A DNA stretch of 63,514 bases, the filler included, from Pelomyxa schiedti (Eukaryota; Protista; Evosea): NCBI GenBank assembly GCA_020536535.1. It is 15 parts of 15 records of this genome, joined end to end, with 100 filler letters (N's around TTAATTAATTAA, not from the genome) between each part and the next. Parts side by side here need not be neighbours in the genome. Positions count along the whole stretch, not along the records: positions 43,259 to 45,168 come from JAHLWZ010000610.1; 14 more parts are not named here. One strand, 5' to 3'. The position numbers and the translations under genes are program-made. Of this stretch, positions 3,131 through 45,168 are shown piece by piece. Numbering within the stretch: position 1 is the stretch's first letter; each line of letters opens with the position of its first letter. The notes beneath the pieces are model-generated. The model ran no database searches. It was not told where the DNA came from and worked only from the letters and a program-made list of their open reading frames with translations.

Positions 3131-6100
3131 ATGCAGACCCTCAAGATTGTTGCTGTAGGTGATGGAGCCGTGGGAAAAGTGTGTAGGTATATAACGAGCC
3201 CGTCCCACAATTAACATTGCCCCGGTTTTCTTTTCAAGACGTGCATGCTCGTACGATACGCCAGGGGTTCATTTCCAAGCAAATATGTGCCAACTGTACG
3301 CTTGCATTTATTTATTTACTTTTTCCCTCCTGTTGTTTTGTTCTGACCAGTGACACAACAAAAAGGTGTTTGAGAATTACACGTAATTACCAAAAAGACT
3401 CTGCTTTAACTTATTGAAATTGTATTAAGTGTGAATGTCATGCTCGAGGACAAGCCGTACAACTTGGACTTGTGGGACACTGCCGGTAATAACAAACTCC
3501 TTTTTTTTTTGTTTTTCTCAACTTGTTTGTCTGCCATTTGTTTGTGGGTGCTTGATTGGTTGGTTTTGTCATGAGTTGTTCTTTGTTGACTGAAATGCCA
3601 TCAGGTGAGGAGGAGTATGACAGACTGAGACCTCTAAGCTATCCCGACACAAGTATTTTCGCGGTATGACTTGAATATAATGTTTTCATTTTGTCATCAC
3701 AAACTCACAAGGTGTGCTTTTCAGTGTTCTCTCCTATCTCTTTGGAGAATGTTCGAAACAAGGTACAAAATATCTCTTGGTTTTTTTTCTTGTTACTCAC
3801 TGGGAATATGAAACAGTGGGCTCCTGAGGTGAGTTGTATCTCTCAGTTGACCCACCCCATTGTGAACCCTGATTATTGTTATTGTTTGGTTAGATTTCGC
3901 ATTTTTGTCCTGAAACCCCATTCATCCTTGTGGGAACAAAACGTGATCTGAGGACCGACCCTGTTGCCCTCAAGCGTATGATCGATTATGAGTACAATGT
4001 GGCTCCTGTTTCTTTTGAACAGGCCTCTGAGGTAAACCTGATTTCTTAAGACAAATCATCATTCAGTTGACTTGTTCATCTTCAGATGGCACGGGAGATT
4101 CATGCGTCAGCATACATTGAGATCAGTTCATTGTCTGGAGAGCACGTTCAAGATCTTTTCACACACGCAATCAGAATCGCCACAACGGGATCAACTGGAA
4201 TGCCACCCTTGAGAAGAAAGCAATCCGTTTCATCTTTTTCATGGGTAGCACTCATCCTTCTGAGATAAATTCATTCTCAGAAAAAAAGGGAACTCTGTGG
4301 AACGCAGTTGTTCCTCGCATTGGAACATCGAGGCCTTCTTCCACTGTTCCTCGGCCCTCATGGTCACCACTTTTCATTAATGTTGATGTAGCTGCAAGGT
4401 AATCTCTCATTATTTAATTCAGGGAGAGTGTCTCACGAAACTACACAGGTACGGTCACACGCAATCACGATGCGGAAGCGTTCTGTTCACTGTCGGTGGA
4501 ATATGTGCCGAGGGTGCACCGCCCGCACCCGAGGTACTGAGATTCGAATATTCGAGCGGAAGTTGGTTGCAACCAATCCCTCTTGGGGTCACAGCTTGCA
4601 ACGAGAACCCGCGGCACTCTGTTGTTTACAAAGGAATGACTTTCGCTGCTTCCGCGTATGTCTCTTGGGATAACTTCCCCCGCTCACAAAAAAAAGGTTC
4701 GTTGACAACCTGATGTTCCTCTTTGGAGGTTTTTATGCCATTCATTTTATCTTCACTGATTGGGTTCACACCACACAGGGAGAAGCAACAGTTACACAAA
4801 CTCGTTGCATTGCCTGAATGTGACCACAGGTGAGTGGTCACTTCTCCCAGAAGGAAATCCCTCAGCATCACCATCTCCTCGATATGGTTCATCAATGATT
4901 GCATTCGCGAGGCGATTATTTGTTTTTGGCGGGTATCTCGAGCATTCATTTTCCAACCTGTGCTCAAATTGATGCAGATATGACTGCAACGCGATTGAAG
5001 GTGAGGATGTTACTTGTTATGACTTGACTGCACAAAGTTGGATTCCGGTGTGTGTTATCTCACATTGTTGAGCACTTTACCATAACTTATGTTCCTATGA
5101 GATAGAAATAATTACGCTCTCTTTTCACTCGACGCACACAGGTGGCAATCAAACCGGGAGGACAAGCACCAAGCGGGAGATTCCATCACACCGCTGTTCG
5201 CCACAACGGAACCATGATTATCTTTGGTGAACCTCTCAAACTCACCCACAAGAACTCACCGGGTTACCCCACACAGGTGGAACAATGAACGGGAAGAGGC
5301 TCAACGATGTGTGGATTTTTGGTGAACAATTATATTAATCCTGATTGTAACATGACAACACACCCAGATATTTCCTCAAAGGTGTGGTTAAAACCAGCGA
5401 CGCAAGGGATCGCACCACCACCGATGCGAGGCCACGCAGCCGCTGTGATTGGTGATGAAATGTTTGTGTGCTCTTGTGATCCCCCTACAAGTTCTTCTTC
5501 AATGGCTTTGTTCAAGTATTTCTCTCTTCTTTCTCAAACAAATTGACACGCTAACATTCAAATTACGCACAGACTCACATTGGGATCAACAACCTTCGAG
5601 TGGTCACGAGTTGAAATTGGGAACACACCACCGGTTCGTGAATTCCACACTCTTCTTTCATCAGATACCGGTTCGTTGATCCTGGCAGGTGGTCGTGCTC
5701 TCACACCATCAGGTTCTTTCTTTCACAATCAATTCATTGACAACAATTGAACGGCCAATACTCCCAAACAAAGGAAAGATGCACGGCGATGCGTGGTGGA
5801 TTCAGCTTTTCAGCAACGTTTTCGGGATGCTTCCGCACGAACTGTGGATGAACATTTTCTCGTACTGTGATCCAAAGGATCTCTTCAGGCTTTCCGCTGT
5901 ATGTGTAAACCATAATGAACATGACATTCGCACTGACACACCATGCACACACAGGTTTGCCGGGATTTCCGGGCACTTGCATCAACAGACGGACTGTGGA
6001 CGCGGTTCATTCCGACGAGCATCATCAGTTCGTCATCAAACAAGGGTGCTCCCCTCAAGTCCCTGTTCAGGTCATCTGCTGCGTTTTACATTTATGCCAG

Positions 6101-43133: not shown

Positions 43134-43728
43134 GTAATGCCGGGCCGAAATGAGGGTCNNNNNNNNNNNNNNNNNNNNNNNNNNNNNNNNNNNNNNNNNN
43201 NNTTAATTAATTAANNNNNNNNNNNNNNNNNNNNNNNNNNNNNNNNNNNNNNNNNNNNCAGCAACTACAGTACGAAAAAAAAATTATGGGTTACCGCCTA
43301 TGGTGGCCGTATCCACCCTCGTTGTTTTGTTGGATCTCTCATGCGACAACACATCGTCCTTTGGGTCTCGTGGTCGTTTGGACATGGGGTAATGAAAAAA
43401 ATCAAAAATTGGGAAGAATACAATCAAAAAAGTGAGGTGGTCTCCTTAATGGACCCCACACTCAGGGTGCTCTGTCAACGGCATTTCTATTTTCCGACAT
43501 GACAAACACATTCTGCACAGAAACCATTGAGGCAATTGTTACAATCTCACCAACTGCAAGAACTTTACCTTGTGAATGATCTGTTAGGAGGTTGTGACCC
43601 TTGTCTCACAACAATATCAGCCTGCAGTTGGCATCCAAGGCACCAAGAGCCGCTTGGAGCTAACACAGTAAGACGAAACTTAAGTCACTGAGAGTAGGTT
43701 ATTCAGGAAACTTCAAATTCTTTGCAGC

Positions 43729-44545
43729 ATGCGTTCGGTGGTTATTCGAGCTCCGGGTGCCTACACCCACGGGTGTGTCAATGTCGAACTGGCATGCAGT
43801 TTTGACAACTGGAAGCGACACCGTATGTTTCATCGGTGGTACACCGACCCGACACCATCTTTGCGACTGTCAATGCCGCCAGGCCAACACCATTACAAGT
43901 TCTTTCTGGACACCGACGAATCGCGTCCGTACGTCGATGGTGTGTGTTTGTTTTCCCCTAAAAAAAAACAGCGTTTTTCGGGGTATCTGAAACAACAACC
44001 ATAATGGTGTAGCGGCCAGGCCACACGTGGTTTTAGGGCCGCGAGATTACAAAAATATCCTGGATGTACCTTATGGCGGTGTTGAGCGAGTCACTTGTGG
44101 ACCCCTGGCGGACCCAAGTGAGAAACCAGCACAGGAGTGGTTGGATACCTGGGCCGACCAACCTGCCGCTATTGTCGCTGATATTGGCGCCGCACGGTCC
44201 CGTATTGGATTCAGCTATGATATGATGCCTCCGTTTAATGTTGAGTCGGTCAGGTCTTGCCCACACCACCAAGGGTACCTGCCTGAGAATACAGTTTACT
44301 GGGGCAAGCGCGTTGGCATCAACGGCCGGTTATTTGAAGACCCAGATATAATACACCTCGATCGTATTTCAGAGGTAAGTGGGAGGAGGGTTCTACCAGT
44401 GCATGCTTCGATTATTGATATGAAAACAACAACAAAAAAAAAAGATGCTCCAGCATGGTATCACATTCCTTGATTCAGAGCGTTCAAGATTCCCAATCAT
44501 CTTCGCTGAACCAGAGGAACTAGAAGACAAAAAGCGTGCAGAGTT
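43729..44545 (+). CDS. CBM48 (AMPK-beta-type glycogen-binding) domain fused to a divergent actin-like domain (partial)
   Basis: VELACSFDNWKRH..M......LRLSMPPGQHHYKFFLD; intron 43940-44012; then AAIVADIGAARSRIGFSYDMMP, PHHQG, VYWG and |HGITFLDSERSRFPIIFAEP, matching actin [27 protein letters not shown], SYVG and HPVLLTEAP. Confidence 0.7.
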
Positions 44546-44645
44546 NNNNNNNNNNNNNNNNNNNNNNNNNNNNNNNNNNNNNNNNNNNNNNNNNNNNNNN
44601 NNNNNNNNNNNNNNNNNNNNNNNNNNNNNNNNNNNNNNNNNNNNN

Positions 44646-45168
44646 GGCCAGGCCACACGTGGTTTTAGGGCCGCGAGATTACAAAAATATCCTGGATGTA
44701 CCTTATGGCGGTGTTGAGCGAGTCACTTGTGGACCCCTGGCGGACCCAAGTGAGAAACCAGCACAGAAGTGGTTGGATACCTGGGCCGATCAACCTGCTG
44801 CTATTGTCGCTGATATTGGCGCCGGACGGTCCCGTATTGGATTCAGCTATGATATGATGCCTCCGTTTAATGTTGAGTCGGTCAGGTCTTGCCCACACCA
44901 CCAAGAGAATACAGTTTACTGGGGCAAGCGTGTTGGCCTCAACGGCTGGTTATTTCAAGACCCAGATATAATATACCTCGATCGTATTTCAGAGGTAAGT
45001 GGGAGGAGGGTTCTACCAGTGCATGCTTCGATTATTGATATGAAAACAACAACAACAAAAAAAAAAGATGCTCCAGCATGGTATCACATTCCTTGATTCA
45101 GAGCGTTCAAGATTCCCAATCATCTTCGCTGAACCAGAGGAACTAGAAGACAAAAAGCGTGCAGAGTT
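44646..45168 (+). repeat. Second, slightly diverged copy (allele or paralog) of the 44016-44545 actin-like exons
   Basis: Near-identical, with several substitutions and a 12-nt in-frame deletion (GYLP). Confidence 0.9.

Follow-up and report, generated by a model that had tools for sequence, protein, structure and literature searches.

Actin-family proteins usually reach their cargo through adaptor proteins, and Pelomyxa species contain conspicuous glycogen deposits. One Pelomyxa species was described under a title that speaks of "an unusual nucleus-glycogen association" (cited in PMC10579272). An amoebozoan precedent for an actin domain that carries a long N-terminal extension is filactin (PMC2441452). 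For glycogen recognition by a CBM the reference is AMPK beta-1, in which the substitutions W100G and K126Q abolish glycogen binding while W133L disrupts it partly (PMC6274970).

Here we compare with these systems a locus of Pelomyxa schiedti in which an earlier note had read a glycogen-binding CBM48 domain fused to a divergent actin. The note had also stated that it knew of no such described fusion. This fits the outcome of our literature and database searches, though the proteins concerned are already public in GenBank under actin names. Specifically, a full-text literature search yielded no description of a CBM48-actin fusion, and neither the P. schiedti genome paper (PMC8887013) nor a paper on amoebozoan actin-binding proteins mentions one.

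Gene layout and state of the source scaffold

The window, by which we mean the whole stretch of 63,514 nucleotides that was analysed, carries the locus on a piece (43259-45168) that is an entire 1910-bp scaffold of P. schiedti assembly GCA_020536535.1. Direct reading of the sequence showed eukaryotic coding DNA with short introns (Table 1). The coordinates in the earlier note were correct, and the in-frame GT-AG intron that it had placed between the CBM48 and actin parts was confirmed. What it had overlooked were the second intron, the gap that cuts exon 3, the repeat of exons 2 and 3, and the extension of the CBM48 domain across the first intron.

Table 1. Features of the P. schiedti locus and its GenBank model, in window coordinates
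Feature	Coordinates	Strand	Description
Exon 1, CBM48 start	43729..43939	+	ATG at 43729; N-terminal two thirds of AMPK-beta-type CBM48
Intron 1	43940..44012	+	73 nt, GT-AG, phase 1, GTGTGTG donor
Exon 2	44013..44374	+	last CBM48 strands (by paralogue alignment), linker, actin phosphate-1 loop, D-loop region
Intron 2	44375..44444	+	70 nt, GTAAGT...AG, phase 0
Exon 3, incomplete	44445..44545	+	actin subdomain-1 helix and strand FPIIFAEP; ends at gap
Scaffold gap	44546..44645	.	100 N
Second copy of exons 2-3	44646..45168	+	exon 2 without its first base, intron 2, partial exon 3
GenBank model KAH3760415.1 (P0001)	43729-45096		hypothetical protein Pelo_7761, 283 aa; model of the window scaffold

In the vicinity of YKNILDV, exon 2 can be aligned with the final CBM48 strands of the paralogues described below, and it further contains the conserved linker helix W-x-D-x-W, the actin phosphate-1 loop (ADIGAARSR) and, in the D-loop region, PHHQGYLPE. 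Since no in-frame ATG precedes the actin-like part and the reading frame is closed until 44006, just 7 nt ahead of the acceptor, exon 2 requires an upstream exon. The splice over intron 1 is also used by the GenBank model of this scaffold, and the predicted spliced product is supported by this model and by conservation. An acceptor-like site (ttctttgcag, window 43714-43728) stops two bases short of the start ATG and may belong to a 5'-UTR intron or to an additional upstream exon; the frame upstream of this ATG is open back to 43684. The 470 bases before the gene (43259-43728) contain short ORFs only, and this segment showed no similarity to the sequences that precede the gene at the other three loci.

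The repeat beyond the gap is ~98% identical to exons 2 and 3 of the first copy and ends on the same base. All nine substitutions between the copies are located in exon 2 (six of them non-synonymous, the other three synonymous), the second copy has lost GYLP through an in-frame 12-nt deletion (window 44273-44284 against 44905), and intron 2 differs by a 3-nt indel. The ratio of non-synonymous to synonymous changes suggests relaxed constraint, with the small numbers to be kept in mind. The deletion falls in the actin D-loop region, where the paralogue P0003 also lacks five residues, and this region seems free to vary in length.

The P. schiedti assembly was obtained from whole-genome-amplified DNA of seven single cells, and genes of this species have a mean of 7.4 introns, 98% of which are GT-AG (PMC8887013); the small introns and the odd scaffold observed here are both in line with these properties. 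The repeated exons most likely represent a second allele or a near-identical paralogue that was misjoined in the amplified single-cell assembly. Because the scaffold breaks within exon 3, the window copy is an incomplete 5' part, partly duplicated and situated on a problem scaffold.

These features raise the question of whether this particular locus, as a dead or partial copy or a pure assembly product within an otherwise real family, makes no functional protein. The scaffold ends twice within exon 3, at the same base on both sides of the 100-N gap, and the genome derives from amplified single-cell DNA; a broken scaffold is, however, uninformative on the gene in the cell. The substitutions and the in-frame deletion that separate the copies would fit decay as well, but in both copies the frames are open, the GT-AG sites are intact and all family-conserved motifs are present, and the deletion sits in a region that also varies in length among intact paralogues. 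Two further observations agree with a fragment or pseudogene, namely that the window copy lacks the equivalent of AMPK beta-1 W133 and that its actin-like part alone scores below the Pfam cut-off, with the remainder of the gene missing. Overall we consider a non-functional locus unlikely, and a dead or partial window locus is compatible with a functional family.

Four P. schiedti loci with one architecture

An exhaustive HMMER search of 1.84 billion representative proteins with exon 2 as query returned three real relatives (P0001-P0003), all from P. schiedti GCA_020536535.1. The further matches P0004-P0007 (E 1e-6 to 2e-4), which are repeat proteins, were taken as chance. P0001, the model listed in Table 1, is a chimeric gene prediction: from an internal Met start it treats intron 2 as coding, continues over the 100-N gap and merges the two copies. 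P0002 (KAH3743839.1, 448 aa, locus L001) is named "actin, cytoplasmic 2" and is 50% identical to exon 2, while P0003 (KAH3743398.1, 415 aa, locus L002) is named "actin 2" and is 48% identical. A word search with P0002 as query retrieved a fourth member that is annotated at full length, P0008 (483 aa), named "actin, flagellar inner arm intermediate chain".

The same architecture was observed at four loci, of which the three beside the window locus lie on other contigs, in agreement with the claim that CBM48 and a divergent actin fold are encoded in one gene. P0008 passed the cut-offs of both Pfam models, with 38.8 bits for AMPK1_CBM (residues 21-91, profile positions 13-81 of 85) and 183.8 bits for Actin (residues 123-462), and the corresponding values for P0002 were 34.1 and 181 bits. 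Unannotated CBM48 exons are present upstream of the annotated starts of P0002 (L001 about 2673-2909, 50.9 bits) and P0003 (L002 about 3811-4019, 26.8 bits), and both splice in phase 1 to the annotated gene bodies. The L002 exon opens with MKRSVSFRAP, its window counterpart with MRSVVIRAP. The models KAH3743398.1 and KAH3743839.1 thus appear to begin too far downstream and to have wrong N-termini. At the other end of P0002, residues 423-448 (L001:4390-4515) comprise ~25 residues that could not be aligned with P0003 and P0008, both of which end in the actin-like GGxxxASLSTF, and the last intron was likely missed in this model. In total, three GenBank models of the CBM48-actin family need correction.

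Intron 1 interrupts the same codon in phase 1 at all four loci (window, L001, L002 and L003; DNA reading). As a position and phase common to all four loci, this indicates a real gene family and not an accident of gene models. Between exons 1 and 3 the DNA of the window locus runs collinear with that of L002 and L003 at ~65% identity, the position of intron 2 is common to the window and L002 (VLE/MVKHG against ISE/MLQHG, the slash marking the intron), and the start Met of exon 1 aligns with the starts of P0008 and of the L002 exon. The GTGTGTG donor of intron 1 is found at three of the four loci (window 43940-43946, L002:4020-4026 and L003:4211-4217), although the coding DNA of those paralogues is only ~65% identical.

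For two paralogues the GenBank model begins only after the CBM48 or within it, as might be expected if the fusion were a gene-prediction artefact in which a separate small CBM48 gene, for instance an AMPK beta fragment, lies beside an independent actin-like gene. However, the CBM48 profile match in P0008 crosses intron 1, which means that the domain needs exon 2 and rules out a reading as two neighbouring genes. Moreover, the identical arrangement and intron phase recur at four unlinked loci, and a start codon is lacking in the part of exon 2 that precedes the actin core. An AMPK beta C-terminal domain, which binds the alpha and gamma subunits, was not found in any of the paralogues, for which Pfam gave AMPK1_CBM and actin-superfamily models only. 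An artefact is extremely improbable on this evidence and is close to excluded. We conclude with good confidence that the window piece carries the 5' portion of a genuine Archamoebae gene, which belongs to a family of CBM48-linker-actin-fold proteins known so far only from P. schiedti. The linker between the CBM48 and the actin domain measures ~35 residues.

No CBM48-actin protein from outside P. schiedti was found among the 1.84 billion representative proteins, by word searches or in the ESM Atlas, a result to be read with the small number of sequenced archamoebae in mind. A word search with the CBM-plus-linker region of P0008 returned P. schiedti proteins only, the ESM Atlas gave no usable match and NCBIfam nothing relevant, and a word-indexed search with exon 2 alone among proteins of 66-210 aa gave no match. 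The family can be described as orphan actin-like proteins that carry a new accessory domain.

Properties of the CBM48 and actin-fold modules

Exon 1 alone (70 full codons) matched Pfam AMPK1_CBM (PF16561, cut-off 26.8 bits) with 34.1 bits and E 3e-8, and its best PDB sequence matches were the CBMs of AMPK beta-1 and beta-2, which bears out the AMPK-beta-like exon proposed earlier. Among families as well as among PDB sequences, exon 1 and the N-termini of the paralogues were matched best by the AMPK/SNF1 beta CBM (PF16561; CAZy CBM48). More distant CBM48 chains, from GH13 type II pullulanase and the SEX4 glucan phosphatase, were matched as well. The 25-residue start of exon 2, when searched alone, had no PDB match.

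With respect to AMPK beta-1, exon 1 has kept the equivalents of W100 (in SFDNW) and K126 (in HHYKF), as has every other copy in the family. The W133 equivalent is present in P0002 only; the window copy, P0008 and the L002 exon are without it. At the N150 position P0002 has an AMPK-like VNN motif, and the other copies have K or R for the first N. Judged from these residues, P0002 likely binds glycan. Glycan binding by the window copy is plausible; it may be weaker or altered there, as in P0008 and the L002 exon, because of the loss of the W133 equivalent and the K or R at N150. None of the family proteins has a hydrophobic N-terminus, and they are probably cytosolic.

The CBM of AMPK beta docks on the kinase domain, and this offers a model for a CBM48 that makes protein-protein contacts without binding glycogen, for example by regulating the actin-fold domain or recruiting a partner. 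Such a role would be in concordance with the state of three of the four paralogues, the window copy among them, in which the W133 equivalent is missing and K or R occupies the N150 position; a fixed intramolecular contact is suggested by the conservation of the linker helix (W-x-D/E-x-W) and of a Cys. Nevertheless, no copy has lost W100 or K126, the pair of residues at which mutation abolishes glycogen binding, and P0002 retains both the W133 equivalent and VNN at the N150 position. We regard a purely protein-binding CBM48 as unlikely, and a glycan-binding module is the reading followed below.

Turning to the actin-like part, all of the actin motifs that the earlier note had listed were found in place. 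Exon 2 carries ADIGAARSRIGF and PHHQG and gave a weak match to the first 40 positions of Pfam Actin; it also carries the motif AAIVADIGAARSRIGF, while FPIIFAEP in exon 3 corresponds to actin HPVLLTEAP. The scores against Pfam Actin (PF00022) were 11.5 bits for copy 1 and 13.4 bits for copy 2 (cut-off 27), as only ~100 of ~375 residues are present. Matches of exon 2 to PDB actins had E 0.2-0.4. The best actin-like PDB match of exon 2 was 9e5c_6i, a 421-aa "Actin, putative" that has D-I-G-A in its phosphate-1 loop too, so that at least one more divergent actin, itself of solved structure, shares this motif.

The weak match of the window is validated by its paralogues, which are 48-50% identical to exon 2 and are full actin-fold proteins with Pfam Actin scores of 181-190 bits. 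P0002 matched PDB actins with 135-141 bits, Asgard archaeal and animal actins about equally, and among its best 60 PDB sequence matches all were named actin and none was an Arp. Outside Pelomyxa, the best-matching proteins of the large database had 28-30% identity. A special kinship with Asgard archaeal actins, which were the top non-Pelomyxa matches, was rejected since eukaryotic actins did equally well against P0002. A weak Pfam INTAP match was below the cut-off and was disregarded.

The AlphaFold model of P0008, which is based on a 38-sequence alignment, has a pLDDT of mostly 70-94 in the actin part. In its CBM part the pLDDT is below 50, as just three sequences of the alignment cover the CBM. 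When this model was compared with actin structures by Foldseek, matches with E ~1e-30 and a target TM-score of 0.77-0.86 were obtained. The actin-fold match on which the earlier reading depended was therefore found in the paralogues, where the fold is established by sequence profile and, for P0008, additionally by the predicted structure. The linker motif W-x-D/E-x-W (EWLDTWAD, window 44132-44155) occurs in all paralogues and is predicted to be helical in the P0008 model (residues 110-119).

Alignments with the paralogues and PDB actins revealed which residues of the nucleotide site have been kept. The DxG core of the phosphate-1 loop is retained, with D-I-G at the position of actin D11-G13 in both window copies. 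In and around it N12 is replaced by I and K18 by R, while the positions of S14 and G15 hold A/S and A/G. The phosphate-2 loop reads D-C-G-E-H/N, in which D154 and G156 are kept, E stands for D157, and G158 has given way to H or N. Also kept are YxLPDG, the GG adenosine motif and, at the C-terminus, WIGG, and the D-loop region is short and variable in length among the paralogues.

In the paralogue alignments, in a region that lies beyond the gap in the window, Q137 is replaced by S and H161 by R. Actin Q137 and H161 position the attacking water, and from their replacement we infer that nucleotide binding is retained and actin-like hydrolysis is not. Hence, the actin-fold module probably binds nucleotide and is probably a poor hydrolase. 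The earlier note had drawn attention to the change of actin DNGSG into DIGAA as a sign of altered nucleotide binding. The change itself was read correctly, but the DxG core remains in place and the clearer catalytic changes are these two substitutions further on.

A possible link between glycogen and actin, and related systems

How might the two modules work together? In the mechanism that we propose, the CBM48 would anchor the protein on cytosolic alpha-glucan (glycogen) particles, and the linker with its conserved W-x-D/E-x-W helix would hold the actin-fold module. The fused N-terminus would then lie at subdomain 1, on its outer face, a place at which tags on actin are tolerated. Being nucleotide-bound and hydrolysis-poor, the actin-fold module could bind, cap or seed actin filaments, or it could self-associate on the particle surface. 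The result would be that glycogen bodies are coupled to the actin cytoskeleton or that a scaffold is formed on them. Docking of the CBM48 on glycogen, with a hydrolysis-poor actin-fold unit that couples glycogen bodies to actin or scaffolds them, is put forward tentatively, and we give it somewhat less than an even chance of being right.

The wider idea of a glycogen-anchored actin-like system in Pelomyxa is rather improbable at present. Here the family would coat glycogen bodies or seed filaments on them and position these bodies, for instance around nuclei, or would couple the stores to cytoplasmic streaming. If true, such a system would add to the actin family a new class of proteins that are bound to cargo. 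Joined directly to an actin fold, a glycan-binding module would, if it acts in this way, be a built-in link between energy store and cytoskeleton. The family is a concrete molecular candidate for the organisation of Pelomyxa glycogen bodies.

Compared with AMPK beta, the Pelomyxa module sits at the extreme N-terminus of an actin-fold protein and has lost the W133 equivalent in three of four copies. The mammalian ACTL7A/B proteins likewise combine a divergent actin fold with an N-terminal domain that is specific to their lineage. They gave weak matches at 25% identity, their N-terminal domain is unrelated (PF16840 on the ACTL7A match), and there is no close kinship with the Pelomyxa family.

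The actin domain of filactin is described as having extreme homology with conventional actin (PMC2441452), whereas that of the Pelomyxa family is very divergent. The two were compared by description, in which no glycan-binding module is reported for the filactin extension. With conventional and Asgard actins, finally, the Pelomyxa proteins share the full fold, the DxG loops, YxLPDG, the GG adenosine motif and WIGG, while they differ in their ~28-30% identity, the replaced Q137 and H161, a shorter and variable D-loop and the N-terminal CBM48. The family is in this sense an amoebozoan addition to the short list of actin-domain fusions.
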